DNA of 38,527 bases, taken from Octopus sinensis (Eukaryota). The notes under the pieces were generated by a model. That model was not told the DNA's origin, searched no databases, and was given only the letters and a program-made list of their open reading frames with translations. The stretch lies in assembly GCF_006345805.1 (NCBI RefSeq), contig NW_021835920.1:1-38527 (forward strand), in the 5' to 3' direction. The position numbers were made by a program, and so were the translations under genes. Shown here piece by piece: positions 11,112 through 36,620 of this stretch (position 1 is its first letter; the number at the start of each line of letters is the position of its first letter).

Positions 11112-11407
11112 GTATTTCTTTACTGCCCACAAGGGGCTAAACACAGAGAGGACAAACAAGGACAGACACACGGATTAAGTCGATTATATCGACCCCAGTG
11201 CGTAACTGGTACTTATTTAATCGACCCCGAAAGGATGAAAGGCAAAGTCAACCTCGGCGGAATTTGAACTCAGAACGTAACGGCAGACGAAATACTGCTA
11301 CGCATTTCGCCCGGCGTGCTAACGATTCTGCCAGCTCGCCGCCTTATTCTGCCAGCTCGCCGCCTTATTCTGCCAGCTCGCCGCCTTATTCTGCCAGCTC
11401 GCCGCCG
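11112..11407 (-). mobile_element. Full-length tRNA-derived SINE family B with TSD and a 4x amplified 5' end
   Basis: Minus-strand head GGCGGCGAGCTGGCAGAATCGTTAG, B box GAGTTCAAATTCC, and a Nin/Deu-like core GCCTTTCATCCTTTCGGGGTCGA. The TSD is 15 bp with 1 mismatch (11097-11111 and 11408-11422). A 21-bp unit is repeated ~3.9x at 11325-11406. Confidence 0.92.
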
Positions 11408-12931: not shown

Positions 12932-13669
12932 TCAATGACGGCGGCGTCTGTTCGATTTCAACCTGCGGTGTTTCCCTTTTTTGCTTTTATTGGTCCCTTT
13001 TCGATTTTTCAATAAATGGCGATTTCGCCCGCTCTTCGGGATCTTTACTCTTTCCTTTACCTTCTTTCGTTTTATTTCTTCTTCTTCTTCTTCTTCTTCT
13101 TCTTCTCTTCTTCATCATCACTCATTCCAGTCTCTTCTTTCTTTTCTTTCTTTTCTCTCTTCGTTTTCATTGTTTCCACTTCCGTTTCCGGTTTCTCATT
13201 TTTATCAGTATTAACATCATCAAAATCATCACTGTCATCATCACTACCAGCAACATCATCGTCATAGTTGTAGAGGTTATCGACGCCGCCCTCATCACCA
13301 TCATCATCACCATCACCATCATCATCATATTCTCCACGACGTCCTCGAAGTTTCCTCGCTTTACCTCTGCTCTTAATTCCCGTGGTTCTTCCATCATAGA
13401 ACTTTTCTAAACTTCTGAATCCATTTGCGACTCTCCTGTTCCGTTCATCGGTGGTGGTCTTGCCGTCAATGCCAGAATTAAACCTTTCACTAACGCCATC
13501 AGCGTAGCCGCCATTTTCGATATCACTTGAGAATTTATCTCTTCTTTGAAGACGACTGGCTTTTTGGGGCGTTTTCCGTTGTTTTAACACTTTGCCTTTT
13601 CGCCCTCGACGTTTTTTGCTTTGACTTTGTTCTGTTGGTCCCACGGTGGTAGTTGGAGTCCCTCGTTCA
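12932..13669 (-). CDS. Coding exon 11 (terminal): basic and D/E-rich low-complexity tail
   Basis: Branch point ACTAAC (13705-13700), long polypyrimidine tract, then CAG|TGAACG. Phase 2 entry gives S-ERGTPTTT.... The read frame stops at 13072 (TAA). Restoring 1 nt at 13106-13107 gives poly-E plus 47 basic residues to TGA at 12932-12934. Confidence 0.85.
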
Positions 13670-16166
13670 CTGGAAGGAGAAAGAAAAGTAAAAGAAAACG
13701 TTAGTTGAGGTCTATATTTATGCAAAGCATTCTCTCTAAGCAACTGTTAAGAGTGTCACAACCAACAACACCGACATCCATTGGTAACAGCAACAAGAAT
13801 TAGAACAACATCACTTACTAACAACAACAACAGCAACAACAACAACAACAACACTACCAACTCACTCCTGAGTGAAAATGGCTTCAAATTTTGGCACAAG
13901 GCCAGCAATTTCGGGGAAAGGCGTAAATCGATTACATCGACCCCAGTACTCATCTGGTTCTTATTTCATCGATCTCGAATGGATGAAAGGCAAGGTCGAC
14001 GACGGCGGAATTTGAACTCGGAACATAAAGACAAACGAAATGCCACTAAGCATTTCGTCCAGAACGCTAACGATTCTTATTTCTTTATTGCCCACAAGGG
14101 GCTAAACATAGAGGGGACAAACAAGGACAGACAAAAGAATTAAGTCGATTACATCGACTCCAGTGCGTAACTGGTACTTAATTTATCGACCACGAAAGGA
14201 TGAAAGGCAAAATCGACCTCGGCGGAATTTGATCTCAGAACGTAACGGCAGACGAAATACCACTCAGTATTTTGCCCGGCTCGCCGCCTTAGTAAGAATA
14301 ACAATCCTTTCTACTAAACGCACAAAGCCGGAAATTTTGGGGAAGAGGACTTGTCGATTACATCGACCCCAGTGTTTCACCGGTACTTCTTTCATCAATC
14401 CCGAAAGAATGAAAGACAAAGTCGACCTCGGTGGAATTTGAACTCAGAACGTGCAGACAGATGACGGATGAAATACCGTTAAGCATTTTGTCCAACGCGC
14501 TAACAGTTCTGCCAGCTCGCTGCCTCCTGAGTAATAATGATTCCTGGTCACAAGACTTTTAAGACGAGGGTTTATTTGATGCCATTATCCTAACGATTCT
14601 GCCAGTTCACCGACTTCGTGACGTCACAGGTAAAATTTCCTATTATCACTTGGTACATCTTTTGTCCGTTGCCCGCTGTATCGGGATACAGAAAGGGCTA
14701 AAAAAACATTTTTAAATGAAGGGTAAAAGTGTAAAGATCCCCTTCGGTCATGAATGACCATGGGATTACAAGTAGAAAGTTCCCTCCCGAGGCACAAATC
14801 TGAGCAAGATTGTTTATGGAAGACCAGCAGTCACCCATGCAAACCAGACTCCACTCTCCACACCACTGCAGGGAAAGGCAAAGGGGCCGATACAGTTTGG
14901 CACCAGTAACGTCACAACTCATTTCTACAGCTGAGTGAACTGGAGCAACGTGAAATGAAGTGTCTTGCTCAAGAACAAAACACACAGCTTGGTGTAGGAA
15001 TTGAACTCACTACCTCATGATTGTGAGACCGACGCTCTAACCACTAACTCCAACACACACACACACACACATCACCACCACCACCAGCACTACCACCAAA
15101 ATACCAACATAATTAATTGTACGAAATTAATAAAAATAAATTAATGAATATAAAAGAAGAATTCCTACCTGTTTGCTGATTGGATGCAGCAGTTAAGAAA
15201 GGCCTTCGAACACGCTGATTGGTCCCTTTGAAAATTCGCATCTTGGTATTGGGTGCGCACAATATTACAGAATTTACGTAGGGTCACCCTTGAACCAAAT
15301 GTGGGTAAACGTTGACCGACTCGAAGTCCTTCAGTGCAACAGAAACTGGCATCTTGAGAGCCTGTAAAATATGCCAACCCCGAAAGGGAACATGCGTTAG
15401 TTGATCTTTATCGAAGAGAGGGGTCATGTGCAATTAGCGTTATTATAGATGTAATTGTAATAATAATTAATTAGCATTCAGTTTTATTATTATCGTTATT
15501 TTATATATACCATTGCTAAGATGAAATACAAGTACATATATTATTATTACTACAAATTAAAAAAAGTCTAACGAAAAATAAATATGTATGTATTTAAGTA
15601 TGTGTGTCTGTATGTATGTATGCATGTATGTCTGTATGTATGTATGCATGCGTGTATGTATGTATGCATGCATACATATATGCATACATACATATATGCA
15701 TACATAATAATGTTCGTCCTTCGGTTCGAAGATGACCAACTGACATCATCTGATGGAACTGCATGCGTGTATGTATGTATGCATGCATACATATATGCAT
15801 ACATACATATATGCATACATACCTATACATCTATTACATAGATTTGTATGCGTGTGTGTATGTGCTTGAACATGCTTGCTCGATCAGAGGCATACATTAC
15901 GTATATGGCCGTGTGTACGTGTGTGTGTAAGTGTGTGTGTATGTCTATGTATGTTTCACTATGTACATTTGTGCGTTTGTGTATGGTTGTGTGTGTGTGC
16001 GTGTACTTTAACACTACCACGAAAGAAACATACATTACAAAATAACTGTTTACATCTAAACAAACAATGAACATGAATAATATAAACAAAACAAATACGT
16101 ATATATTACAAATATATATATATATAAGCAGATGAATATATGTATATATATATATACATATATATA

Positions 16167-16213
<47 letters not shown>

Positions 16214-17066
16214 TTCATTTATATATACATATATAATGTATGTATATTCATATATATATATGAATTCATATATACACTACATACATATTCGTATATATTT
16301 TTCTTTTTTTTTATGTTAAACCGGGGTACACCGTACCTTTCAATCTTTTAGAAACCAGTGGAACAAGATGGTGGTCATCTTTCAGATTGGCGTTATTTTT
16401 CCCACCCGTATAACGATCCGTGTCTTTAACCTGGTTTCGCACATCGTCCCTTGACCGACCCGGGGTGAACACAGCTGGATCGCGACTAGAATGCTTCAGT
16501 TTCGGTTCCCCGTTTTCGGACATCAGTAAAAGTTTGTTTTCCTTTCGGCCACTCAGACTTAAATCTCTGGCCTAAATGCAAGATATGCACATTTTTTTGT
16601 TTTTTGTTCGTTTCTATTTTGTGTTTTTTTTTTTTTCTTTTGTCAAGACACACAAAATACATTTAAATAAACAATATCAACAAGAACAACAGCAAGAATA
16701 AGAATGCAATATAGTCAACAACCAACAACAAAATAATAGCTATAAACACATTAGTTAAATAACAATGCTCAGTTATAGATCGTATATAAATATACATGCA
16801 TAGATATATATATAATCTTTACAGATATAGTGTGAAAAATTATTAATTTAATAAAATCAACAAATTTCACCTAGTAGTTTTTCGGTATGGAAAAGAACCA
16901 TATTCGGTAAAAACTTACACAAAAAGTTTTTTTATATATATATATAATTATAACAATAGGGGTTTAGCAACAAGTTGCTTGACCACATACCGAAAATTAT
17001 AGAAATAGCAGCCAAAAGACTGCTATTTCTTTTCTCTACAAAAATATGTCTCCAAAATTATTGTTA

Positions 17067-17111
<45 letters not shown>

Positions 17112-19539
17112 AGGTTTTGTCTCGGCATATATTATTACTTTTCTTTCGTTGATATAAATATATTTTATTTTGTTGATGTTTGATGAAGAAATTAGCAACA
17201 AAAATCAAACACACGTTCATAAATGCATAGATACGCAAACGCACACACACACCGTGCATATATACATATACACATATATGCATACACACACACACTGACA
17301 AGTTTTTTTTCATTCTCTCTCTGTTTTTATTTTCTCTTATTCCTATCTCTTCATTGAAGAGCGTAGGCTCGAAACGTAAAAGACTTTTTCATTTTCGCCA
17401 GCGTCAAACTAATACACATGCCTTTTGTTCCTACACCTGTCTTCGTCTTTTGTTTTCTGTAAATTTTAACTATATATATATATATATATATGTATGTATA
17501 TATATAAGCAAGCATATATACATACATCACGATAACCCAAAATCATTTGTGTAGGTCTTTCAGCAAGAAATAGAAGAACCGTCTTTATCGGACTACGAAA
17601 AGACTACCACCATATGTGTGTGTATGTGTGATGTCTTATTTATCTATGTAAATGTACACGTGTATGCGAATGTGTTTATGTATGTGTGTTTCTGTGTAGA
17701 TGCAGGTATCTGTATGCGTGTAAAACATTTGGTTGTTCGCTAAAAACTCACTAATAATTATAACCACATTAATCCCTCGTAACATCGCGGTTTATTTTTT
17801 AAGCTTTCGTTGATTCCTCTGTGGTGTTGTTTTGTATTTATAATAAAATAAATATATACACACGATAAAAATTAATAAAAGGAATATACAGTACTGTTCC
17901 TACTTCGCGGATTTTCACCTATCGCGGGCGGGGTGGTGGTTAGAACGTAGCAGCCGCGATAGTCGAGGGATTACAGCGTGATATATATATGGCCTTCCAG
18001 TGGTCAATAGCAAATTTATATCGGTACAAATTATATCTCATAACACCCAGTATATCATTATTTTTTCTTAATATAAGACAATCTAAAATCCTTTTTGTTA
18101 TAGAGACAAGGGCTGAGATTTTGAAGAGGGGCCGATGCCTTGTCAGTTACATAGATCCCCTCCCCCACCACCAGTGTTAAACTGGTGCTTATCTTATCAA
18201 CCACGAAAGGCAAAGTCGACCTCGCCGGAATTTGAACTCAGAACGAAACGAAGCATTTTATCCGACGTGCTAACGGTCCAACCACCCCACCGCCTCAAAG
18301 CAGTCTAAAATCAAAATCAATTAAAATTTAATTTACATGTATCTTATTATACAATTATTGATTAATTTGTTAATTTGTAATATTTTGCTAAATTGTGTTG
18401 TTGCGTAATAGAATTAAAAGGAAATTTATATTCGCTGCCAATAAATTATGCAGACCGATTTCTCAATTTCTGTAATGAAACGTTGCACATCCCTAGAATA
18501 CGGCACCACAATCCGTCTGAAATTGGTTGCCATTGATTAGCATTATGGTTTTCTTATTGTTTATAATTAGCGGATGAACGATTATTTAGAATTGATATCT
18601 AGTATTGATCACTAGATGTAAGTATTGATTGCTAAGACATGCACAAAGGCCACGTGATTTGGTGGGGTGGGGGTGGGGTGGAGAATACAGTCGACTGAAA
18701 TATAGTATGGGTGAATGGTTAAGAATCCCGATTCGCAATCATGAGGTTCCGGATTCGATCCTACTGCATGACATCTTGCGTAGATATCTTTATTAGAGCC
18801 TCGGGTGGACATAAGTAACGTATGGAATGTTTTCATGATTGTAATATCCAGTCTTGCCATATATTTATTCCACTTTGATTCTGCGATAAAATTACGTTAA
18901 TTACGAGTTCGAAGGAGACTCAGTCATTTATCTGCTGATTCAGTGAGCAGGGAATTCTTTTCATGAAACAACAGAATATTCATCTTCGAAATTGACGGAG
19001 ATCCACTCAACATTTTTTTTGTACTAATTGCATCCACTTTCCAAATATATTTCCGAAGCTGGCAACTACTATCAACTTCATTTTTTAAAGCAATTAGCAG
19101 CATAATTATTTTCATGACTTTTTAAATTACTAACGGAAACAGTCGAACAGCTAAGTAATTCTGAGAAATTGTGTATATGAATTCAATTGCATAATAAAAC
19201 TTGAATCCACAGGTTCGAAAACCGAAAATGTAGATTGGATATAATAAGCTAAATCTTAATATAAACTTTATAGGTATACCGCTAATAATATTTTTTTTTA
19301 ATGCTCAGTTACTCAGTGCAAATATATATCTATGTATATATGTTGCAATAAAGGTAGGATTATGTCGGTCTTTGATCTAATTTATTGAGCATGCTTTCTC
19401 ATATTGCCCTTATGAAAAATCCTTAATAAATAAATATTCAAACACGAACACTGCACTGTCATGCCTTTAAAATAACATCATTGAAAGAGTCTTTTCTTCT
19501 CTATCTATGTATCTATCTATCTATCTGTCCACCTGTCTG

Positions 19540-19598
<59 letters not shown>

Positions 19599-19723
19599 GT
19601 CCACCTGTCTGTCTATCTATCTATCTGTCCACCTGTCTGTCTATCTATCTATCTGTCCACCTGTCTGTCTATCTATCTATCTGTCCACCTGTCTGTCTAT
19701 CTATCTATCTGTCCACCTGTCTG

Positions 19724-19796
<73 letters not shown>

Positions 19797-20328
19797 AATA
19801 TCTGTCTGTCAGTCTGTCTGTCTATATATACATGTGTGTGTGAGTGTGCGTGTGTCTGTGGACACAAACAAAAGCACTCGCCTTATTAGCTGCTGTCATA
19901 CACACACAAACACGCGCACATACGCAAATCTGTGCTATTTGAAACCGAAAATACACACACACACATAATGCATACATAAAAGAAGAAACGCATACACCAA
20001 TTCTTAATCACACAGTAATACGCCATCACACATGCACACACCTACATACAAAACGCTGTTTTTCTTCATTCACACATATATACTCAAACGCAACACAACA
20101 GCATCAACATAAATACACGCGTAGGCATAAATGATTTAGGGGTTAACACGATCAACAAATACTTACATTGGCCAACGGGTTGGTTTGGTAATATTCTAAG
20201 TCAACCAATGGATGGGTTTCGTCGTAAAACGCGATGTGGTCTGGACTGTGAGAGCTTCGTTCTGAGGAGTTTTTCGCAAAGCATTCGTAACGGCTCTCAG
20301 CTAAAAGAAACGTATAAAACAGCAAAAT

Positions 20329-20409
<81 letters not shown>

Positions 20410-20459
20410 GTGTTGTGTGAGTGAGTGTGTGCATGTATGTATAAATATATATGCGTATG

Positions 20460-20501
<42 letters not shown>

Positions 20502-23256
20502 TATGTGTATATGTATATATATACATAAGTATATATGTATAGATATATATGTATATATATATATGTGTGTATTCATTAAAATTAACTTGTTTTTGTAGCC
20601 GGAGCTACGTATGTATATATGTGTGTGTGTGTGTATGTGTATGTATGTATATATATATATATGTATATGTATGTATATGTGCATGTATATATATGTTTGT
20701 ATGTATGTATATATGAACATACGAATATGTGTGTGTGTACGTATGTATATAAATGTATTTCTGATAACAGCCATCATTTGAAATATCCCTCCCCACACTC
20801 CACCTGTCACCTATGCTTTTTTTCTTGACACCAATTGATATACCCATGTCTACACAGAACACTCACTACAACAATAACATCAGCCGGCAGAACCTTAGAA
20901 TAATAGAATCCTTTTCTATTCCAACACCACCTACCAAGACATAGCAACCAAACTGCCTCTAACATACGTTCTTCCAAGTTAGGAATAGAGACATTCTACA
21001 ATGCTCTTTTGTCGTCGATATAGATAAAAAGAAAACAGACGGTACGGCCATTGTTAAAATCCTTCAGATCATAGGTCTGCAGGGGCTAATGGAGTTTTGC
21101 ACCTCTCCTTAAAAAATGCATTATTTTGAAAATTTTTTTCGGGTCCCTACGTTTTAGATGTCGGAGATTACGAATATGCAAAAACAAAATTATCCCCCCT
21201 CGTTCCCCTCCCCCTCCCCTATTTAAAATTTTAATTTTTTTTCGAAATTTTTCTTTCTCCTATGTTTTAGATGCCAGAGATCCCAGATATGCAAGAAACC
21301 GCGTTTTTAAAATTTTAAATTCAATAAGTATATAGATATGTGTATAAAGAGATAAATAGATATGAAGGTCTTCCTGGGGCTAAAAACAACAGTAATACCG
21401 TCTTCTATGGGACCGCCACATTTAGTTGACAAATATATTTTATGAATAAATGGACAGGAATAAATAGACAGACAGATAAATACATAGATGAATGAAAAAG
21501 TCCAAAATTTAAAATTGGGGCAGGGCTGAAATTTGAGCCACTTATTAAACTTAATAACATTAATTACAAAACATTAATGTTTGTTTCTCATAAAATGGTG
21601 AATATTTAATTTACATTAAATTATTACTTACGATTATCTAAGGCAAACACAAGTAAGTTCTTTTCACTTTAATTTCGTTTTTGGATTTGGTTTGCAAGAT
21701 TCTTCATATGAGTTCGTGTGTTGAAGCATATTCTGTTGTGTCTGGGGAGAGTCATTTTCCTTTTGTGCCTTATAATGTAACACACTCACCGGTAAAATTT
21801 CCACTTATTTCTTATTTTTATTTTCCTAAAATTTTCGTTGCGTCTTGCAACCTTTTCAATAGTCTTACTTGGGAGTCAAGATTATTGAAAAGGTTGTAAG
21901 ATGCAACGAAAATTTTAGGAAAATAAAATTAAGAAAAAAGTGGAAATTTTACCGGTGAGTGTGTTACATTATAAGGCACGTAAAGAAAATGACTCTTCCC
22001 AAACACAGTAGAATTTCATTTTAATGTTTTTGTCTGTATTTAATTACGATTTGCAATATGTTCGTCAATTCGTTACGATCTCTTTAAAGTGAAGATGTAG
22101 GGCAGGATGAAATTTAAAAAAAAAGATGTTTGCATATTCGTAATCTCCAACATCTAAAACGTAGGAATCCCCCCCCCCCATTTTTTTTAATGCATTTTTC
22201 TTGTTGAGATGCAAAACTGCACTCGCCCCGGTTTGCTCAGTCACAGCTGATTAGGTCTGCTGAGCAATAATGTTGAATTTGTGTGTAGAGGGCCTTATGA
22301 TATTACTAAGGTTGCGATTGTTCAGCCGTCGAAATCGCAGTTAAATCTTTCTCAAATCGCATAGTACTGTCTTAAATAAAATGGGATCTATTAGCCAATA
22401 TAGTTCCTGCTATACAAAAGGGCGGGAGGGCCAAAGCTGGAATGTCTTTTGATCAGAGGTTTTCTGAATTAGAGCTCACCTGGGGTTTAGCGATAACTTC
22501 AACAACAACAGAAAGTGAGCTGGCAGAATCGTTAGCACGCCGGGCGAAATGCTTAGCGGTATTTCGTCTGCTGTTACGTTCTGAGTTCAAATTCCGCCGA
22601 GGTCGACTTTGCCTTTCCTCCTTTCGGATTCGATAAATTAAGTACCAGTTACTACCTAGGGTAGATATGTAATCAACTTAATCCTTTTGTTCTTGTTTGT
22701 CCCCTCTATGTTTAGCCCCTTGTGGGCAATAAAGAAATAAGAAACAATATTTAAAAACTTTCTTTAAGATTCTATACTTGACAGCCTCAAAAGTAGCTTC
22801 TTACCAAGTTCATAGCAGCACGTTTCTTGTCGGGTACTCATCCAGGATTCACGATGTTTGGCGTATGGTACGGCCGGGTACCCATCACCACACAACTGGT
22901 CAATCCTGTTTCTACGGATATCCTCAAAACATTCTTGACGATTGAAAGTGTCCTGTGGTTGGCATTGGTAAAAAAGACATTTTTAAGAGAGAGGGAGAGT
23001 GAGAGAGAAAGGGGTAACAGAGAGAGAGAAAGAGAGAGAAAGAAAGAGGGAGTGTGTGAGAGAAAGGGAGAGAGAGAGCGAGAGAGGGAAGACAGGGCGG
23101 AGAGCAAGTAGAAGAGGGATGGGAAGAGTGTTAAAGAACTCTGAATGTCCGATACCAAGCGAGACAATTCGCTTCGAATGACCAAGGATGGTAGATACCG
23201 ATATTTCGCCATTATTGTGATACGCGGTGTTCTTTAACACTCGAGTGCATATATAT

Positions 23257-23300
<44 letters not shown>

Positions 23301-24543
23301 ATATATATTATATATATATAAAGAGAGATAGAGAGATAGATAGATAGACAGACAGACGGGTAGCAGACAGATAGGCAGAGATAGATAGCTTTTACAAGAT
23401 GTATATATATATATATTTGTATGTATGTATTAATGCACATATACACATACACACGCGCAAAGAAAGAAAAGAAGAAAAGTAGCAAGAGAGGGATAGAATG
23501 AGAGATTGGGCGAGAGAGAGAGAGAAAGAGAGAGAAAACGAGAGAGAGAGTCGGGGAGAAAGAGGGAGAGAGAGAGAAAAAGAGAGAGAGAGTCGGGGAG
23601 AAAGGGACAGATTTTAGGTATTCTATGAATGCAAAATTGCACGTTTAATGTGTTTCAATGTGTGTTTGTATGTACGTGTGTATATATACGTGTGTGTGGA
23701 GAGGGAGATAGAGAGAGAGAGAGAGAAAGGAAAAGAGAAAGACAGAGGAAGAGAGAGAATGGATAGAACCAATGTCTTACCGTAATCCCACAGCACGTTT
23801 GCACTTCGATTCTACGCTCTTCAAGTGCCAACTGTAGAAAATCCCACCGTGGGTCGGATTTCTCGAGATCATTCAATTGGCGTGGTTCCAAGAAATTCAC
23901 CGGAAACGAATCGCTCGTTCTTTCTTCTTCGACATGATGGCAAAGCTGCGAGAGAGATTCCTGCTTCTGCAAAGAGACGGAAATGGATAAGCATCGTATA
24001 TGTATTCATGTGTGTCCGTGCAAATAGAAACATACGTAATTTAGTAGACGGAAACTGTGTGGAATCCCGTCGTAGTTAGATATATGTATGCATGTGTGTG
24101 TGCGTGTGTGCATGTGTGTGTTTAAATAAAAGGGTTTTTTTATAGTGAGAATATTGTGAACCACTGCCCTAAAGTGCAGCATTATGCATTTGGGAAACCC
24201 TTGCTTAAACAACTGATTGTCTTCATCGAGAGTGGTGGACAGCACTCATTGCTTTTGTGTACCTACTGGTGGAAAATTTGAACCAGATATTCTCTAAGCT
24301 GGTTGGTCATTACTATCTTATTATCTCAGTTATCAACCGCAGATTATTATTATTATTCTTTTTTTAACCACGAGGAAACCAAAATTATGTCTTACCATTT
24401 TGGTCACTTCCTCCTCAAAAGTCATCAATGGAATTTTGGCTGGCTTTCTTGATGTCATGTCTGAAATCGAAAGAAGGTATTTTGCGAAATTAAAATCGAA
24501 ACTGCTTCTGATTTATGCACTAATTCATAATAATAATAATAAC

Positions 24544-24611
<68 letters not shown>

Positions 24612-25539
24612 TGATGATGATGATAATAATTCTTTCTACAATAAGCATAAGGCCTGAAATTTGCTGGGAGAAATTAAGTTGATTATATCGACCCCAGTAC
24701 TCGACCGGTGCTTATTTTATGAAGCCCGAAAAGATAAAAGGCTAAGCGAACTTCGCCAGAATTTGAACTCGGGACGCAAAGACTGACGAAATGCTGCTAA
24801 GCAATTTCGAGCGTATTGCCATTATAGTAAATATATACATTCTTTGTTTTTTTATGTAAGAAGAAATTAGGATGATGTTGCATGAGGAATATATGAAGTA
24901 ACCGATTCCAGTCACTCAAAGTAATTTAAAGTGCCAAGAGTTTTGAATCTCCAAAGAATATACAGCGACGCAACCTTTACAATGAAAGTTCTATGTAGCT
25001 AAACAAGAATGAAATATATAGATTATGAGTTCTAATTTCGTCACGTGACTAGTAATTTTGAGAGAAGACCAGAAATCGATAGCTTTGCCCCAAGTACTTG
25101 ATTGGTACTTTATTCTGTCGATCTACCAAAGACGAAGTGCTGAGGAATAAATAACAAATTTTGTGATGGTTACCTTTGGGACATATCCTTCGATAGAGAG
25201 CATCGCCGAGGGTATTACCGGAGTAGTAGAAACCTTGGATAGATTTTACGGTAATTCTGAAAGGGAAATAAAAAAAAAAACAATTTCAATTTAGGAAAAG
25301 AAGATAAGCAAAAAAAAATTTTTAAGGGAAACCAAAAGAAAAGCAAAAAAATTCAATTTAGAAAAAAAAATAAGCAAAAGAATTTTGTATAATTCAACTC
25401 ATTTTATTTTAGGGTCGGTGTTTTTCTTGAGGTGGGTCAACAAAGAAGGTTCAAATTTTACGGACATCTCTATACATATAGATACACACACATATATCTA
25501 TAAACATTCACACACATACATATATACATAATACATACA

Positions 25540-25575
<36 letters not shown>

Positions 25576-28500
25576 AGAGCATAGTAGTTTGCTTGAGGTA
25601 TACAAGATACAGTAGAATAATCAATGAAAAAGGAAATGAAGGAAGTTTCTAGCAATGCAGCGATAAAGGTTCCTCAACATTCGTCTCTGCATTGTTACAA
25701 GATTTCCTCATTTCGTTTATTATTCCACACACACACACACACATTTACAAGTGAGGAGACCCCACCACACTTCGGTCATGAATGACCATGGGGTTGCATC
25801 TAGAAAGTTCCCCTCTTAGGTACAAGTCCGGGCAAGGTTGTTTTTATGGAAGACCAGCAGTCGCCCCTGCATACCAGCCTCCCCCTCTTCACACCACCAG
25901 TGTTATCCAAGGGAAAGTCAAAGGGGCCGATACAGCTTGGCACCAGTGATGTCGCAACTCTTTTCTACAGGCTGAAACCGGACGTGGTTCCTCTTGATGA
26001 TGTCTTGAGCTAATTGGGTCCTATAAAGAGCTGTTGTGGTAGCAGACCACGAAACATGGTTGAAATTCCCACTAGATCAACGTGAAATAAAGTGTCTTGC
26101 TCAAAAACACAACACGCAGCCCGTTCCAGGAATCGAACTTGCAACCTTACAATTGTAAACTCGACGCTCAAACTACTGAGCCATACGCCTTCACATTTAC
26201 AAGTACGTATTTATATTTATATATGTATCTATGTATTTACGGATGGATGGATGCGTGGATGGATGGATGGACGTGTTTTTCTACGTGCGTTTGTGTTTCT
26301 CCGCTCAACTGCTTGACAGCCGGTGCTTGTTTGTTTACATCCACACAACTTAGCGGTTCGGGCAAACGAGACCAATAGAATACGTGTCAGAATTTAGGAA
26401 AAAATATAATTAATACTAGAGTCGATCTATTTGACTAAAACCGTCAAGACAATGCCCCAGCATGGTCGCTGTCCAGTGACTGAAACGAGCCAGAGATAAA
26501 CGATATCCCCGACTGCAATATCTTACATGTAATCGGCCAGTACGCTATCACTGATGAAATAAAAAAATATCTGCTGTATGGTCATGGCTAGGTTGTCTTC
26601 CATTAAACGTCTGTTCTGTCACAACTGACAAGGAACTAACCAACAACATTTTTTTTAGTCCACGGGCATATAGCGTAATGGTTAAGAGCGCGGGCTACTA
26701 ATCCCAAGATAGCGAGTTCAATTCCAGGCAGTGCCTTGAATAAATAATAATAATAATAATAATAATAGTGACATCAACAAAATAATACCTTAGGAATGGG
26801 AACCCAGGGTTGGGTTCAAAATTCTACTAGGACACCCGATGAAGGCTGGAGAGTAAATCAGCCGAAACGTTGTGGTAACAACAAACAAGATGAGGACACA
26901 TATCCGTCCAATGTAGAATTCAGTACATTATTTACATTATTTACATTTGACGGATATTTGTCCTCATCTTGTTTGTTGTTAACACAACGCTTCGGCTGAT
27001 ATACCCTCCAGCCTTCATCACGTGTCCTGGTAGAATTTTAAACCCAACCCTGGGTTCTCATTCCTAATGGTTTTAAAAAAAATAATAACACCAGCAAAAA
27101 AAAACCCAAAAACAATACCTTAGGAATGAGAACCCAGGGTTCGGTTTAAAATTCTACCAGGACACCTGATGAAGGCTGAGGAGTAAATCAGCCGAAATGT
27201 TGTGGTAACAACAAACAAGATGAGAACACATATCCGTCAAATGTAAATAATGTAAATAATGTACAGAATTCCTCATCTCTAAAATATAGAACAACAACAA
27301 TAACTGTAACAGTAGCAGCAATATCAATTATAATATCTAACCTGATGGTTGCACAGGCACATCGAGGTGGGGTCCATTGGAACTGTACTTTGCGTAGAGA
27401 TTTTTTACTTCCGAAGCTGACTACACTCAGACAACGGTCAGGTTGGTATAAATAGCCATCAGGTCGGACAGAGAACTTCCCGTTGCCACATTTTGGTTGG
27501 TCACTCTCAGTCGTGGCTAACAGGTCAGTTATTGTAGTACGACCACTGTAACTCTCGATGGTAACTGGAACAGAAATGAGGTGAATTAAGGTCACAGAAA
27601 AGGGCATGGTTTTTGCAAACAGTTTTTTTTTTGCAGGATCATCATCATCACGTGGTGAAAGCTTTTCGGAAAATAAACATTTTTTGGCAAGAACAAAGAT
27701 TTTTGATAGGCAAAATATTTTAACAAGATGAAAGATTTTAGCAGGGTCAACAGTTTGACCAGATCATCATTTTAGTAAGGACAAAATTATAGGAAGGTCA
27801 ATGTTTTTAACAAGTTATTTTATAATTTTTTAAATTTAAATTCTTAGTAGATTAAATTTTTTTAGCAGAGTCACTATTTTGACGAGGATACTCATACTCT
27901 TTTACTCGTTTCAGTCATTTGACTATGGCCAAGCTGGAGAACCTCTTATAGTCGAGCAAATCGACCCCGGAACTTATTCTTTGTAAGCCTAGTACTTATT
28001 CTATCGATCTCTTTGTAAGTAGAATTCGGTCGACCTAATTTCTTGTAAGTAGAATTTGGTCGACCCCAGGGAATACCGTTGATGGTCTTTTGTAATTGTT
28101 CACTTAACACCACCACCACCACCACCACCACCACCACCAGGCCTATCATAACTTATGTTGGAGTCAACTCTGATGAAAGCATTTGGGTTGGCTCACTGGT
28201 TTCAGAATTTCTTTCTTCCCCTCACCGTTCTTCGAAGCTTTCAATAAGATAACCCTCCCCCCCAACCAGCCCTTCTTCCTCTCACCTAAACGGGGATCTT
28301 AATGGGTTGAAGATATTACTAACAGAAATTTCTAGTGCAAGCTACGCCTCGGAAACGTGGGCCTAAAATCTGAGGATACCATTCAAGATAGTTCTGAAAA
28401 TTCGGTTTTGTAATCTATTAAAAAACAAGTATCATTACTTCAATAGAGACCACATAAATCTGTACAAAATCTTGCTTGGCCTGTCCTGTATTATTAGAAG

Positions 28501-30195
28501 GTAATAAGTACTGCTTTACGACCGACCCACAGGGCCAGTTACTCCCAGATTCGATGGCGCATGAATGACCGAGATCCCAACATGCCCCTCACCCCCGAAA
28601 GGGACGCTCACCCGTCGCAGGGTTACTCATTTACAGCCGAGTGGATTGGGGCAACATGAAATGAAATGTTTTGCTCAGGAACACCACGCATCGTCCGAGC
28701 CGGGAATCGAAACCACGCTCCTGCGATGGTGAATGGAACATCTTAACCACAAGACCTCGCACCTTCACTCAAAAACCAAACAAAAAAATAGGCTATTTCT
28801 GTAAGAAAATTCTATCAAAACTTGACACACACCATTATCGAAGTCATAAGAACGAAGGTCCCGATATTCTTTCAAATTTTGGCAAAATGTCAGCAATTTT
28901 GAAAAGGGGGTGAAAGTCGATTACACTAACCCCAGTTTTCAAATACTATCTATTAAATCGATTCCGAAAGAATGAAAAGCAAAGTCGATATCCGCGGAAT
29001 TTGAGCCGGACGAAATGCCGCTAAATATTTTGTCCGACGTGGTTACGGTTCTGTCAGTTCGCCGCTTTATCTGGTCGCGTAATAAGAAAATAATACCAGT
29101 GACAATATAACGCGCCAGACCTGGCAGTAAACCGCCTAAAATGTTGGATCTCTTCGAACTGTGGAGACACTGGGTTACCAAACGCAAAAGCGGCAAGTTA
29201 AGCATCCGATCAAAGATATTAATTATGGTCCAAATGGCAGGAGATAGCGAGAACCCGGGAGTCCGGCGAGGATTAAGCTGCTAACAAAATTTCAGAAGAT
29301 ATGACTGAAGTTACTGCAAGGCGGCGAGCTGGCAGAAACGTTACCACACCGGGCGAAATGCTTAGTGGGTATTTCGTCTGTCTTTACGTTCTGAGTTCGA
29401 ATTCCGCCGAGGTCGACTTTGCGTTTCTTCCTTTCGGGGTCGATAAATTAAGTAACAGTTGCGTACCGGGTTCGATCAACTCAATTGGCCCCATCCCCCC
29501 AAAATTTCTGGCCTTGTGCGTAGAGTAGAAAAGAATCGTTAGCACGCCGATGAAAAAAATTGCTTATCAGCTTAACGTTCGTCTTTGGGATCTCAGTTCA
29601 AATTCCGCCGAGGTCGACTTTGCCTTTCATCTTTTCAATGACGATAAAATAAGTATTGAGCACTCTAAGTCGATGTAATCGGCTTACTCCCCTCCCCGAT
29701 ATTGCTGTCTTTGTGCCAAAATGTGAAACGAATAAAGCGTTACTTTCGACATTTCAAAAATTTTGTTAGTTTATAAACATTGAGAAGCCACCCACACACA
29801 CAAAAACGAGAAACACCAAAACATTAGGCAAAGGTTTGTAACTGGTTAAAATCAATATATAATATGAACTAGATATATAATTACATGTATAGCTTTGTCC
29901 AACTTCGTAACCATTTTTGGCGCCAGCAACCCGCAGCCAAAACACTGGATCACCGTTGTGATTTTGGTTCTTTCTTTCTTCCTGGCTGTTGAGTTGCCAA
30001 CTTTTTGGACAAGGTTTGGCAGCAAACGACTGCTTTGCTGAAGAATTAGATGTTGAGAATGGAAATATTAAAAATCGATAGATACATGAAAGGTTATTTA
30101 GTTTTAAGTTTACAGACAGATGCATAACGAAGTAAGATTGATGGTTAGCAAGGTAAATGGTTGGATAGTTAAACAAAACAACAGATATGAGACAT

Positions 30196-30226
<31 letters not shown>

Positions 30227-30519
30227 TTGGAGATAAATAGGTCATCAATGTGTTTTATGATATATGTACTTATGTATGCACACACACACACACACACACA
30301 CACGTGTGTGCAGATACACAGAAAATTCTGAAAAACAAAATAACTTGATATCAATTACATAGAAAATATAACACAGACAGAAACAGATCTAATATACACA
30401 ATACAAACATACATAAACATACCTAACATACGTATACAGATATATGCACATGTATATGGGTATATGTATGTGTGTATATATATATATACACGCATTCACA
30501 TACAGAGAGATAGATAGTG

Positions 30520-30578
<59 letters not shown>

Positions 30579-30608
30579 TCAATGAAAGAAATAATATAGA
30601 TATATATG

Positions 30609-30649
<41 letters not shown>

Positions 30650-30693
30650 GCACTCACCTACAGATAGATGGACAGATATATATATATATATAT

Positions 30694-30763
<70 letters not shown>

Positions 30764-30886
30764 GGATGGATCGAGAGATCAATGAAAGAAAAAATATAGA
30801 TATATACCAGCCAATATTAACACCAGCAGGATGAAGGAATCGATCATGTGACCGGAATATCGTCTTAGAAGAGCTGCTGCCAACAT
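12932..30886 (-). CDS. Spliced gene (11 coding exons) for a secreted protein: signal peptide, Reeler-like, 2x CC-X9/10-C, anaphylatoxin-like, acidic/basic tail; 698 aa as read, 745 aa if the GAA-tract indel is repaired
   Basis: Exon lengths 79, 153, 223, 83, 65, 186, 148, 134, 235, 193 and 598 (739 repaired) nt. All introns are GT-AG and phases chain 1,1,2,1,0,0,1,0,1,2 with no internal stop. Totals of 2097 or 2238 nt are divisible by 3. Confidence 0.88.
13880..14527 (-). mobile_element. Stack of three SINE family B/B' copies in intron 10
   Basis: Three consecutive copies (~13880-14070, ~14072-14292, ~14305-14527), each with GGCGG/GGTGG-AATTTGA(A/T)CTC and a decayed (A/G)TCGAC...ATGAAAG core. 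Confidence 0.85.
14733..15045 (-). mobile_element. tRNA-derived SINE family C
   Basis: Minus-strand head AGTGGTTAGAGCGTCGGTCTCACAATCATGAGGTAGTGAGTTCAATTCC, core TTGAGCAAGACACTTCATTTCACGTTGCTCCAG. A homologous copy lies at 25765-26192. Confidence 0.8.
15169..15361 (-). CDS. Coding exon 10: anaphylatoxin-like 6-Cys module
   Basis: Acceptor TTTTACAG|GC, donor CAG|GTAGGA; 193 nt, phase 1 to 2. Encodes [11 protein letters not shown]...FC...[15 protein letters not shown]. Confidence 0.88.
15645..15821. repeat. 62-bp perfect direct repeat flanking a 53-bp unique insert
   Basis: 15645-15706 equals 15760-15821; the insert is 15707-15759. Confidence 0.8.
16337..16571 (-). CDS. Coding exon 9: hydrophilic linker
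   Basis: Acceptor TCTTGCATTTAG|GCC, donor AAAG|GTACGG; 235 nt, phase 0 to 1, open frame ARDLSLSG...VSKRLK(G). Confidence 0.85.
17330..17470 (+). mobile_element. Penelope-terminus-like short repeat with a degenerate hammerhead vestige (intron 8, antisense to the gene)
   Basis: TTGAA-GAGC-gtag-GCTC-GAAA-C-GTA-AAAGA at ~17354-17383; same family as 7960-8080; followed by (TA)n. Confidence 0.5.
17893..17976 (-). mobile_element. pogo/Tigger-like DNA transposon end fragment
   Basis: The minus strand CTGTAATCCCTCGACTATCGCGG...CCCGCGATAGGTGAAAATCCGCGAAGTAG resembles Tigger-type termini (from memory). Confidence 0.5.
18100..18295 (-). mobile_element. SINE family B' fragment
   Basis: GGCAAAGTCGACCTCGCCGGAATTTGAACTCAGAACG core. 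Confidence 0.75.
19500..19797. repeat. (TATC)n with a recurring CTGTCCACCTGTCTGT variant (24-bp higher-order unit)
   Basis: Direct reading; the variant unit occurs 6 times. Confidence 0.9.
20167..20300 (-). CDS. Coding exon 8: end of the second Cys module
   Basis: Acceptor TTTCTTTTAG|CT, donor AAT|GTAAGT; 134 nt, phase 1 to 0. Encodes (A)ESRYECFAK...YQTNPLAN. Confidence 0.9.
21093..22218. mobile_element. Non-autonomous element with long imperfect terminal inverted repeats (intron 7)
   Basis: CTACGTTTTAGATGTCGGAGATTACGAATATGCAAA (~21147-21182) pairs 35/36 with ~22130-22165. The outer ends AGTTTTGCA...AAAAAATGCATT are also inverted. Confidence 0.65.
21730..22014. other. ~285-bp fold-back (MITE-like) nested in the TIR element
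   Basis: Arms ~21765-21866 and ~21878-21979 are highly complementary (GTGCCTTATAATGTAACACACTCACCGGTAAAATTTCCACTT and its reverse complement are perfect); weaker pairing extends to 21730/22014. Confidence 0.88.
22515..22744 (+). mobile_element. SINE family B, near full length
   Basis: GAGCTGGCAGAATCGTTAGCACGCCGGGCGAAATG...GAGTTCAAATTCCGCC...CCCCTTGTGGGCAATAAAGAAATA; ends ~60 bp from the exon 7 donor. Confidence 0.88.
22805..22952 (-). CDS. Coding exon 7: ECF...QLC...TCC Cys module (not in the ORF track)
   Basis: Acceptor CCAACCACAG|GAC, donor TTG|GTAAGA; 148 nt, phase 0 to 1. Encodes [49 protein letters not shown]. Confidence 0.88.
23781..23966 (-). CDS. Coding exon 6: QLC...TCC Cys module
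   Basis: Acceptor TCTCTTTGCAG|AAG (an in-frame alternative CAG lies 6 nt downstream), donor ACG|GTAAGA; 186 nt, phase 0 to 0. Confidence 0.88.
24396..24460 (-). CDS. Coding exon 5 (not in the ORF track)
   Basis: Acceptor TTCTTTCGATTTCAG|AC, donor ATG|GTAAGA; 65 nt. Only the phase 1 to 0 frame is open: (D)[21 protein letters not shown]. Confidence 0.82.
24527..24624. repeat. (AAT)n followed by (GAT)n
   Basis: Direct reading. Confidence 0.92.
24640..24810 (-). mobile_element. SINE family B' fragment
   Basis: ATCGACCCCAGTACTCGACCGGTGCTTA...CGCCAGAATTTGAACTC. Confidence 0.72.
25174..25256 (-). CDS. Coding exon 4: C-terminal strand of the Reeler-like domain (not in the ORF track)
   Basis: Acceptor TTTCCCTTTCAG|A, donor AAAG|GTAACC; 83 nt, phase 2 to 1. 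Encodes (R)[27 protein letters not shown](D). Confidence 0.87.
25765..26192 (-). mobile_element. SINE family C copy with a ~100-bp interruption
   Basis: Homologous to 14733-15045 (TTCGGTCATGAATGACCATGG...GGAAGACCAGCAGTC...GTGTCTTGCTCAA); unrelated sequence at ~25975-26075. Confidence 0.75.
26305..26500 (+). mobile_element. Diverged SINE family A 3' fragment
   Basis: CTTAGCGGTTCGG...CCCCAGCATGG...GACTGAAAC. Confidence 0.6.
26664..26737 (+). promoter_or_regulatory. tRNA-like Pol III head (A and B boxes) followed by (AAT)n
   Basis: A box TAGCGTAATGG at 26671-26681, B box GAGTTCAATTCC at 26714-26725, an anticodon-like loop CT-ACT-AA and a partial acceptor stem. The T arm does not pair, so this is not a functional tRNA. 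Confidence 0.75.
26831..26876 (+). ncRNA. Minimal type I hammerhead ribozyme fold, copy 1 (U4C core variant)
   Basis: GACAC-CCGATGA-A-GGCTG-gagagtaaat-CAGCC-GAAA-C-GTT-GTGGT. Confidence 0.6.
26981..27026 (-). ncRNA. Minimal type I hammerhead fold, copy 2 (C3G and GAAA to GAAG; likely inactive)
   Basis: The minus strand reads GACAC-GTGATGA-A-GGCTG-gagggtatat-CAGCC-GAAG-C-GTT-GTGTT, with a full 5-bp stem I. Confidence 0.55.
27161..27206 (+). ncRNA. Minimal type I hammerhead fold, copy 3 (intact catalytic core)
   Basis: GACAC-CTGATGA-A-GGCTG-aggagtaaat-CAGCC-GAAA-T-GTT-GTGGT; predicted cleavage after GUU (27201). Confidence 0.68.
27342..27564 (-). CDS. Coding exon 3: core of the Reeler-like domain
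   Basis: Acceptor ATTTCTGTTCCAG|TT, donor CAG|GTTAGA; 223 nt, phase 1 to 2. [32 protein letters not shown] matches the Reeler C..V.....K..V...W.PP...C...R pattern. Confidence 0.9.
27897..28012 (-). mobile_element. SINE family A 3' fragment
   Basis: GTTTCAGTCATTTGACT...AGTCGAGCAAATCGACCCCGG...AGTACTTATTCTATCG; followed by a short tandem duplication TTGTAAGTAGAATT(C/T)GGTCGACC. Confidence 0.8.
28520..28766 (-). mobile_element. tRNA-derived SINE related to family C
   Basis: Minus-strand head TTGTGGTTAAGATG...GTGGTTTCGATTCCCGG; core CTGAGCAAAACATTTCATTTCATGTTGCCCCA.TCCACTCGGCTGTAAATGAGT. Confidence 0.7.
28870..29070 (-). mobile_element. SINE family B' (diverged)
   Basis: GCAAAGTCGATATCCGCGGAATTTGAG...TCTGTCAGTTCGCCGC. 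Confidence 0.7.
29318..29730 (+). mobile_element. Two tandem SINE family B/B' copies
   Basis: AAGGCGGCGAGCTGGCAGAAACGTTA... (~29318-29525) and GAATCGTTAGCACGCC...TCAAATTCCGCCGAGGTCGACTTTGCC (~29533-29730). Confidence 0.85.
29885..30037 (-). CDS. Coding exon 2: end of the signal peptide and start of the Reeler-like domain
   Basis: Acceptor CTAATTCTTCAG|CA, donor ACAT|GTAATT; 153 nt, phase 1 to 1. [23 protein letters not shown] resembles the Reeler G...F.I...G....Y.PG..Y.V segment. Confidence 0.85.
30808..30886 (-). CDS. Coding exon 1: start codon and hydrophobic signal peptide
   Basis: ATG at 30886 (in-frame TGA 4 codons upstream; second ATG at 30847) encodes [26 protein letters not shown]. 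Donor G|GTATAT is phase 1 and rather weak. An acceptor TTTAG| at 30919 implies an unlocated 5' UTR exon further upstream. Confidence 0.75.
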
Positions 30887-30987: not shown

Positions 30988-31439
30988 TTATATATACTGC
31001 AAATGGCGGGGTCTAAAAAGCTAGACACGCGAACAACAGGTCACTGTGAGCTTCTGTGTCTCATTTAAGACCCTTCTCTATATTTATAGGGAATTCTGTA
31101 AGGGGAGCGGGGTATGTGATGTGTGGGGTGGCGTAAAGGTAGCTGGGTTTGGTTGTGGTGGCGGTGGTGGTGGCGGTGGTGGTGGTGGTGGTGGTTGTGA
31201 TGGGTTGTAGGCAGGTAAGTGGGTGCTGGTACGTGAAAGGTAAGAACCCGACCAACCCCTATATCTCGGCTCTATCTCCCTATTTTGTTTCTTTCTTCTT
31301 TATTTTTTTGTTTTTCAGCTGTTATAGTAAGAAGTACCCACCGTTAGCAGCACCGACACCACCACCACCACCGTCAACATATACCTCTTCTGTAAATACC
31401 CCACCCAGCACCAAACCGCACTGCATGGCACTGCGTCGT

Positions 31440-32040
31440 CGCTTGCGTATAACGACCCCATCACCACCACCGTCGCCACCACCGCCACCACCACCACCAC
31501 CACCACCACCACCCCACCACCGATACCATCACCACCAACACCACCACCATCACCACCACCACCGATACCATCATCATCACCACCACCACCACCACCACCG
31601 ATACCATCACACCAACACCACCACCATCACCACCACCACCGATACCATCATCACCACCACCACCACCACCACCACCGATGCCATCATCATTACCACCACC
31701 ACCACCACCTCCACCACCGATACCATCATCATTACCACCACCACCACCACCTCCACCACCGATACCATCATCATCACCACCACCACCGATACCATCACCA
31801 CCAACACCACCACCACCACCACCGATACCATCGTCATCACCACCACCACCACCACCACCACCACCACCACCACAAACACCGCTACCATAACAACCACCGC
31901 CGCCATCTTCTCCACCACCAACACCGTCACCCCCATCATTTCCACCACCACCACCACTACCATCATCACCACCATGACAACCATCACCGTCACAGCCGCC
32001 GCCACCATCACCACCACCACCACCACCACCGTTGTCACTA
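31440..32040. repeat. (CAC/ACC)n-rich trinucleotide tract with ACCACCGATACCATC subrepeats
   Basis: Direct reading. Confidence 0.92.
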
Positions 32041-32309
32041 CTGTAATAACATCCTTCTCGTCCTCATCGCCATCGCCCTAGCCTTATTCATCCGTGTTGT
32101 TTTCGTCGCCAACATACCCACCACCTCCACTACACAATAGTACAAGAAACACCTCAAAAACCGAGATAGTCACGTCTAGAATGTCTTTAATTATTGGTGT
32201 TCCCATTCTGGGCTGCCTATGGCTAAACAATGCCAAAGCCTCTCTCTCCCTCTCTCTCTCTCTTTTATCATATTCTCTAGCGAAGGTCACTGGCCTCTGC
32301 AAGTTTGAT

Positions 32310-32639: not shown

Positions 32640-32850
32640 CAACACATATATTATTTTTATATATATACATAATATATGTATATATATTATATATATATTA
32701 TATATATACTATTATATATATACATATATATATGTATAATAATTAATATATATATTATATATATATTTAATATTATACATATATATTATACATATATATA
32801 TGTATATATATATATATGTATATATATATATTATATGTATATATATATAT

Positions 32851-32881
<31 letters not shown>

Positions 32882-32902
32882 AATGTATATATATATATAA
32901 TA

Positions 32903-32958
<56 letters not shown>

Positions 32959-35580: not shown

Positions 35581-35809
35581 TAGGAGTGGGAGGTAAGTAA
35601 GGGCTGAAGGAGCAGCAGGCATGCAGAGGTCCAATACAATAGTGAAGGCATGAATTAGTCACGTGCACAGGCTGACATTGCATGAGTGAAGCACCCGGTG
35701 TGACAGAGGTCCACCCCGAAGTGAAGCACCGAGTGCAGAGGGAGTAGATGGGGGTGGGGGGAGGTGGGAGTAGAGAGTGGGGGAGAAGCAGAAGAGGGAG
35801 TGAGAAGTG

Positions 35810-35983
35810 AAGAAGAGACAGGAGAGAAGAAGAAGAGAAGAAGGAAGAAGAAGAAGAAGAAGAAGAGAGAAAGAAGAAGAAGAAGGAAGAAGGAAGAAGT
35901 AGAAGAAGAAGAGTAAGAACAAGAAGAAGAAGAAGAAAAGGAAGAAGAAGAAGAAGAAGAAGAAGAAGAAGAAGAAGAAGAAG

Positions 35984-36014
<31 letters not shown>

Positions 36015-36085
36015 GAAGAAGAAGAAGAAAGAAGAAGAAGAAGAAGAAGAAGAAGAAGAAGAAGAAGAAGAAGAAGAAGAAGAAT
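35810..36085. repeat. (GAA)n polypurine tract
   Basis: ~275 bp that are almost entirely A/G. Confidence 0.93.
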
Positions 36086-36134
36086 GGAGGAGTTTGAAAC
36101 AAAAGCGGCAACAATAATAAAACAACAACAATAA

Positions 36135-36620
36135 TAATTCTTTCTACTACAAACACAAATCCTGAAATTTTGATGGATAGGGGCTAATGGTTTACATCGA
36201 CCCCAGTGACCGTCTGGCTCTTATTTTATCTTACCCCAAAAGTTTAAAAGGAAAAGATGACCTGGGCGGGATTTGAACTCAGAATGTAGAGACGGAATGA
36301 ATGCCGTAAAGCATTTATTTGTCTTCCTGATACCGAACACATAATTTTAATGCGAGGGGCTACTCAATTAGATCGACCCCAGTACGCAACTGGTACTTCA
36401 TTTATCGACCCCAATACGCAACTGGTACTTCATTTATCGATCCCGAAAGGATGAAACGCAAAGTTGACCTCGGCAAGCTAGCGGATCGTCAACGTTCTGA
36501 TTTCAGATTCCGCAGAAGTCGACTTAGCCGTCGTCGTTTCGCGGTCGATAAAATACGTACTTACTCCCTCTCCTAAAATTGCAGGCCTTGTGCCAAAATT
36601 TGAAAACGATACTAGAATTA
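36135..36620. mobile_element. Cluster of SINE B' fragments: minus (36135-36310, 36365-36475) fused to plus (36480-36620)
   Basis: Core motifs in both orientations; internal 32-bp tandem duplication at 36372-36403 and 36404-36435. Confidence 0.72.

Follow-up and report, generated by a model that had tools for sequence, protein, structure and literature searches.

A cysteine-rich octopus protein with Reeler and albumin/ECM1-type modules is a probable member of an old bilaterian Endo16-like family

We analysed a stretch of 38,527 nucleotides (nt) from Octopus sinensis (contig NW_021835920.1 of assembly GCF_006345805.1, positions 1 to 38,527 of the forward strand; hereafter, the window). The window is AT-rich and full of microsatellites, and it contains the minus-strand gene LOC115231448, whose coding sequence runs from 30886 to 13072 in 11 exons and comprises 2097 nt for a product of 698 residues, 20 of which are cysteines. 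All exon borders have AG acceptors and GT donors, the phases are compatible, and the translation is residue-for-residue identical to XP_036355983.1, which is annotated as “uncharacterized protein LOC115231448” of Octopus sinensis. Thus, the 11 phase-compatible GT-AG exons proposed in a first-pass annotation, which was made from the letters of the window, are those of the database protein, and the three exons that this annotation had found to be invisible among the open reading frames (ORFs) fit exons 1, 4 and 5 with lengths of only 79, 83 and 65 nt, respectively. Its 3′ limit at 12932 fits two AATAAA signals, of which one overlaps the stop codon (13076-13071) and the other is in the 3′ untranslated region (12991-12986; region 12932..13071, minus strand). 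At the level of sequence, LOC115231448 is confirmed as a real, previously annotated and unstudied octopus gene for a cysteine-rich protein that is predicted to be secreted.

Exon 1 (30808..30886; this and all following exons are on the minus strand) begins with the ATG at 30886, ends at a phase-1 donor (G/GTATAT) and encodes residues 1-27, which resemble a signal peptide, as had been proposed; an AlphaFold (AF2) model, built on a family alignment of 36 sequences, has an N-terminal helix at residues 2-29. The following three exons encode a Reeler domain. Exon 2 (29885..30037; residues 27-78, phase 1-1) contributes the N-terminal half and fits the family consensus CP...P.Y.L...GY.PG..Y, exon 3 (27342..27564; residues 78-152) the middle with a W..P.C.C motif, and exon 4 (25174..25256; residues 152-180) the end. 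With exons 2-4 spliced, residues 28-180 match the Pfam Reeler family (PF02014) over profile positions 13-130 of 131 with 28.9 bits against a cutoff of 21; the match was not recovered in a scan of the full-length protein. In the AF2 model, the predicted local distance difference test score (pLDDT) is 79-94 over residues 41-180 and mostly at least 90, and the best Foldseek matches of the model in the PDB are the reeler domains of F-spondin (2zot, chain entry 2zot_C, and 3coo) with an E-value of 5.8e-10 and a template-modelling (TM) score of 0.75. These data confirm that the octopus protein has a Reeler beta-sandwich. The fold is shared with the Reeler domains of F-spondin and reelin; however, identity is 17% and the partner domains differ, since spondin, TSR, DOMON and cytochrome b561 domains are absent from the octopus protein. 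The insect Reeler-only “putative defence proteins” are also secreted, Reeler-bearing proteins. Unlike the octopus protein, they are without the albumin-type unit, the six-cysteine module and the charged tail described below, and none of them was among the 49 family matches to which we return.

After F-spondin, the next Foldseek matches of the Reeler model were to the bacterial copper-binding protein YcnI (E = 2.5e-04, TM about 0.6). As a similarity of a model, this match hints at an old link between Reeler domains and metal-binding beta-sandwiches.

Exon 5 (24396..24460) encodes a short linker (residues 180-201). Exons 6-8 encode a confident helical module at residues 194-325, with helices over residues 194-321 at a pLDDT of mostly 74-96. 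Exon 6 (23781..23966; phase 0-0) provides the start of this unit, from C210 to C259/260, with helices at a pLDDT of about 90; exon 7 (22805..22952) the middle, with C271, RRNRIDQLC284 and C308/309; and exon 8 (20167..20300) the end, ESRYEC319F. The eight cysteines (C210, C259/260, C271, C284, C308/309 and C319) are spaced C...CC-x10-C...C...CC-x9-C and vary little or not at all between family members. The same eight-cysteine double-loop spacing in an all-helical module is found in serum albumin and ECM1, from which the octopus protein differs in having a single unit joined to a Reeler domain; to our knowledge, neither albumins nor ECM1 have a Reeler domain. The first-pass label “ECM1/albumin-type” is supported indirectly, that is, through relatives that pass Pfam cutoffs and not by a direct Pfam match of the octopus unit. 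Specifically, a profile of 22 mollusc units aligned by hhalign to a profile of 19 units from hemichordates, echinoderms, an annelid and amphioxus with a probability of 98.6% (E = 5.6e-16), and the mollusc and mainly deuterostome profiles have the motif RID..C ... CC..GE.RY.CF in common. Two deuterostome relatives are above the Pfam cutoffs, P0036 for Serum_albumin (PF00273; 40.4 bits against 34.4) and P0064 for ECM1 (PF05782; 27.8 against 25), and both also bear an N-terminal Reeler domain. Among the 22 mollusc units, 15 have sub-threshold Pfam matches to ECM1 and 10 to Serum_albumin. In the Foldseek search with the whole-protein model as the query, the best 50 matches listed were beta-sandwiches and other non-albumin folds.

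Exon 10 (15169..15361; residues 436-500) encodes a C-terminal six-cysteine module, CC-x22-C-x18-C-x6-CC (C443/444, C467, C486 and C493/494). All 27 aligned family sequences, deuterostomes included, have this pattern without variation and always near the C-terminus; modelled alone, the module has three helices at a pLDDT of 89.7. The first-pass annotation had read it as anaphylatoxin-like, and this we could not establish. The order of the six cysteines, the Gly after the first CC, the C...F..CC end and a helical make-up are shared with the ANATO domains of C3/C4/C5 and fibulins. However, the octopus loops of 22 and 18 residues are about 10 and about 7 residues longer than those of C5a as aligned (roughly 11). 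The module scores 16-18.6 bits against Pfam ANATO (PF01821; cutoff 21.4), and the match covers just the last 15-17 of 36 profile positions (from position 20 or 22). ANATO is matched by four of the 27 family modules (best E = 0.0023) and is the only Pfam family matched by more than one member. Against the PDB, the family profile reached C5a at E = 2.9-3.6, with deletions of 7 and 6 residues needed in the two loops, and a sequence search with the module found nothing significant; with the module model, no Foldseek match was at E ≤ 0.001, and the ANATO domain of fibulin-2 (8r5w) was matched at E = 4.4 with a TM score of 0.34. We therefore describe the module as having an ANATO-like cysteine pattern, with its relationship to anaphylatoxins unproven. 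A degenerate albumin-type unit was also considered for this module and rejected (hhalign probability 0.45%).

The remainder, 40% of the protein, is predicted to be disordered in the AF2 model. Exon 9 (16337..16571), which is required to match XP_036355983.1, encodes a basic-rich linker (residues 358-436) with a pLDDT below 50. Exon 11 (13072..13669) encodes a highly charged tail that is predicted to be disordered, with basic, D-rich and K/E blocks and poly-K, and ends with the stop codon TAA at 13074-13072; 47 D/E and 51 K/R are present in its 198 residues. Basic pairs lie on either side of the six-cysteine module (KR at 432, KKRR at 518). In exon 8, an acidic motif of the type DESDPxNDIxDYP at residues 336-351 (approximately 20229-20182) is conserved in at least 20 mollusc members and, with the pattern as used, was not seen in deuterostome relatives. 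The Tyr in this acidic context suggests a candidate sulfation or docking site.

For comparison, we used a 70-kb locus of Octopus bimaculoides (L001, GCA_001194135.2); it is collinear with the window, and the non-exonic sequence is about 80-87% identical. Eight exons could be compared (3-8, 10 and 11), and these are 90-99% identical between the species while their 150-nt flanks are 80-93% identical. No indels are present in exons 3-8 and 10, and identity in these is 91-99%; for instance, exon 3 is 94.6% identical in DNA and 93% in protein against 80% in its flanks, and exon 7 is 100% identical in protein. The frame of exon 10 is open in O. bimaculoides, with 88% protein identity and changes chiefly at third positions, and beyond an early stop in another frame, five of eight substitutions are synonymous in the portion that was read by eye. 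In exon 11, the frame is kept with whole-codon indels across 164 aligned residues. Overall, the eight exons have 42 codons with synonymous differences only and 50 with non-synonymous differences, a codon pattern that suggests purifying selection.

Other octopus models of this gene look truncated or mis-started. The O. bimaculoides protein LOC106872865 has 365 residues, its first exon is 41 kb upstream, and exon 8 is joined out-of-frame to exon 10 and runs into an early stop. This odd model is explained by assembly gaps at L001 47987-49935 and 58507-59682, which hide the counterparts of exons 1-2 and 9, respectively. In the O. vulgaris model, the Reeler domain is missing its first half and a different upstream exon is used. 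For annotation, the O. sinensis model can be taken as the reference. In addition, a Logan contig of 2281 nt, which is probably an mRNA assembly, has an uninterrupted ORF of 561 residues for a relative with all three modules; thus, the three modules share a single reading frame.

Exon 8 ends in two GT donors 4 nt apart (AAT/GTAA/GTATTT, 20163-20167), and both these and the next approximately 35 intron bases are identical in O. bimaculoides. If exon 9 is skipped, the +4 donor joins exon 10 to give an in-frame protein of 621 residues without the linker, while the normal donor gives a frameshift and an early stop. The tandem donors may thus allow an alternative isoform without exon 9. A 10-exon model of the gene built in this way, from exon 8 to exon 10 via the +4 donor at 20163, was superseded by the 11-exon version that equals the database protein. 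Two further candidate exons were rejected: a cysteine-containing open stretch at 20995-20810 is not in XP_036355983.1 and has 62% identity over just 24 residues in O. bimaculoides, and a candidate at 15006-14701 overlaps a repeat that matches other places in the O. bimaculoides locus.

When the O. bimaculoides protein was run exhaustively with HMMER/phmmer against 1.84 billion representative proteins, 49 relatives were identified at E ≤ 0.001. These are from gastropods (Patella, Lottia, Haliotis, Lymnaea, Nucella, Bulinus and Plakobranchus), bivalves (Crassostrea, Mizuhopecten, Tegillarca, Mactra, Solemya and Potamilus), the chiton Liolophura, the annelid Capitella, amphioxus, the hemichordates Glandiceps and Saccoglossus, and the echinoderms Lytechinus and Holothuria. 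The full architecture is present in gastropods, bivalves and the chiton, and part or all of it in the annelid, amphioxus, hemichordates and echinoderms. In most full-length members from molluscs, 19-22 cysteines are present and the modules follow one another as in the octopus; the six-cysteine module is also near the C-terminus of hemichordate, echinoderm and annelid relatives, and the order of domains is unchanged among full-length members from molluscs, hemichordates and sea urchins. The statement in the first-pass annotation that no family combines these domains was, therefore, wrong. Long forms in hemichordates and echinoderms have from seven up to fifteen albumin-type units, whereas molluscs have one.

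The orthologue of Lottia gigantea (KB200559.1; locus L002, 1501-10133) has ten exons, the boundaries of which correspond to nine of the ten octopus intron positions; the intron between exons 3 and 4 is missing. Because intron positions are common to Lottia and the octopus, the Reeler/unit/six-cysteine architecture is old, as judged by gene structure. Phase-1 introns border the Reeler cassette (exons 2-4), and the introns on either side of the unit cassette (exons 6-8) are in phase 0. These phases are compatible with ancient exon shuffling, and any such event would predate molluscs. The earlier proposal, that exon shuffling produced a protein specific to molluscs or cephalopods, is unsupported, and its claim of mollusc-specificity is wrong, given these shared introns and the relatives in an annelid, amphioxus, hemichordates and echinoderms.

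The family entries are named “uncharacterized”, “hypothetical”, “unnamed protein product” or “Reelin domain-containing”, with the sole exception of “endo16-like 235” of Saccoglossus (phmmer E = 1.7e-08; for comparison, Glandiceps 1.5e-08 and Lytechinus pictus 8.7e-06). Endo16 and the endo16-like proteins of hemichordates and amphioxus, as represented by the relatives compared, have in common with the octopus protein a signal peptide, a Reeler domain, albumin-type CC-x-C units, acidic tracts and the C-terminal six-cysteine module. By contrast, a single unit instead of seven to fourteen, the DESDPxNDIxDYP motif and the basic/poly-K tail distinguish the form of the octopus and other molluscs. In textbooks, Endo16 is an example of cis-regulatory logic, and the sea-urchin protein has an RGD motif and tandem acidic calcium-binding repeats. 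Endo16 is a secreted protein that, as reportedly found by Soltysik-Espanola et al. in 1994, binds calcium and lies on endoderm surfaces. Endo16 is an endoderm marker in sea urchins (PMC5407767), and a gut cell cluster in amphioxus is marked by “adhesion molecule endo16” (PMC11661445). The function of the Endo16 protein has been described as unknown (PMC9856734).

Based on these data, we suggest that LOC115231448 encodes a secreted cephalopod member of the Endo16 family with a calcium-binding role in the matrix or at the cell surface, a reading to which we assign a probability of roughly 60%. The parts of this reading differ in strength; the gene structure, the folds, and the membership and age of the family are shown by the analysis. 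From modules, order and introns, it is very likely that the octopus protein is the cephalopod member, in the short mollusc form, of an old bilaterian Endo16-like family. The more specific function, that of a secreted matrix or cell-surface glycoprotein of epithelia that binds calcium and anionic partners, is tentative and less likely than not; here, we infer secretion, tissue, calcium binding and an adhesive or matrix role by analogy. In this model, epithelial cells, probably of the gut as for sea-urchin Endo16, would export the protein to the cell surface or matrix. There, the acidic tracts would bind calcium with low affinity, the basic blocks could bind anionic partners, and the three disulfide-locked modules might provide binding surfaces.

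Several observations weigh against this interpretation. The octopus unit had no Pfam match at E ≤ 10 or, in a separate scan, at E ≤ 1, and a PDB sequence search found no match for the octopus cysteine-rich half or for the profile of mollusc units. The octopus protein has one albumin-type unit compared to seven or more and is devoid of RGD and of tandem acidic repeats, both of which are present in the Lytechinus relative. With the Lytechinus relative as the seed, no protein named Endo16 was recovered, so the Endo16 link rests on the name given by a depositor and on the architecture. Exons 1, 2 and 9 fall in the O. bimaculoides assembly gaps and are outside the conservation comparison. Finally, a literature search found no report of expression, secretion or calcium binding for mollusc members. 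The same search found no characterised mollusc orthologue, nothing relevant on Endo16 in connection with Reeler, ECM1 or RGD/calcium, and no work assigning molluscs or annelids to the Endo16 family, and six family gene identifiers were absent from the main text of the papers searched; one apparent match for a mollusc Endo16 was false, the text being “Endo, ref. 16”.

Alternatively, the protein could be a soluble carrier of the haemolymph or gut lumen, in which the albumin-type unit binds small hydrophobic ligands or metals in the manner of vertebrate albumins. The presence of this unit and the resemblance of the Reeler model to YcnI would fit such a function, as would the suggestion (PMC9856734, citing Baker 2002) that Endo16 descends from an ancestral albumin gene. 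Nevertheless, a single eight-cysteine unit is far below the multi-domain ligand pockets of albumins, and the charged and disordered share, nearly half of the protein, suits matrix or surface binding better. We regard a carrier as unlikely.

It is less likely still that the protein has a lineage-specific function in immunity or defence, with the Reeler domain recognising microbes like that of the insect Reeler-only defence proteins and a true anaphylatoxin module being cleaved at basic sites to release a signalling peptide. A Reeler domain is present, the CC..G...C...C..F..CC cysteines are in ANATO order, and C5a is the only biologically coherent PDB match of the family profile; moreover, four of the 27 family modules match ANATO, and the basic pairs KR and KKRR flank the module. 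However, all ANATO tests fell short of significance, the loops are longer than those of C5a, the family is not lineage-specific, and its closest named relative is a developmental gut-matrix protein.

An equally doubtful alternative is an acidic matrix protein, of the kind found in shells, that handles calcium or is associated with biominerals. The tail has an Asp-rich block, and the family is widespread in shelled molluscs. By contrast, relatives are present in Capitella, amphioxus and hemichordates, octopuses have no external shell, the acidic tract is poorly conserved in sequence, and the papers in which the six family gene identifiers were sought do not mention them in their main text.

That a gene predictor fused two neighbouring genes on a small scaffold, one for the Reeler domain and albumin-type unit and the other for the six-cysteine module and tail, is very improbable: the O. 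bimaculoides model ends before the six-cysteine module and the 5′ end of the O. vulgaris model differs, but the assembly gaps hide exons 1-2 and 9, the last exon of the O. bimaculoides model is in the early-stopping frame while the other frame is conserved, the same module order is found in more than 25 species and in one ORF on the Logan contig, and the Lottia gene has the same exon layout.

With Endo16-family membership as the preferred reading, the mollusc and annelid relatives make this family bilaterian rather than deuterostome-only and date the albumin/ECM1 double-loop domain to before the protostome/deuterostome split. The placement bears on the origin of this domain; no new mechanism emerges from it. 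The short, single-unit mollusc protein is also a simpler subject for biochemistry. We speculate, as an improbable scenario, that an ancestral bilaterian secreted protein was close to the mollusc form with its single founder unit, that multiplication of this unit led to urchin Endo16 and loss of the Reeler domain to the vertebrate albumin and ECM1 double-loops, and that the six-cysteine module is distantly related to the anaphylatoxin fold, is older than the use of this fold in complement and fibulins, and is perhaps released at the flanking basic sites.

The remainder of the window is rich in repeats. A 32-bp satellite is present in about 140 copies at 1-4465 and in 44 copies at 4483-5905, where the consensus is largely the reverse complement; the array, therefore, seems to flip orientation near 4470. 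Numerous long ORFs on either strand of 1-5905 are spurious products of this satellite. The introns and flanks of the gene contain interspersed repeats of about 130-220 bp (11176-11346, 13893-14077, 14143-14525, 22515-22686, 24600-24810, 29318-29536 and 36110-36320), each of which recurs at some ten or more sites, in both orientations, in the 70-kb locus of O. bimaculoides. These repeats probably form a family resembling short interspersed elements (SINE-like), and ARAGORN found no tRNA gene in the window. Long microsatellites are (TCTA)82 at 19500-19829, (CCA)190 at 31458-32030, (AT)161 at 32646-32953 and (GAA)91 at 35809-36084. The (CCA)n tract gives rise to an artefactual ORF of 310 residues at 31149-32081, which is rich in His, Thr and Pro.

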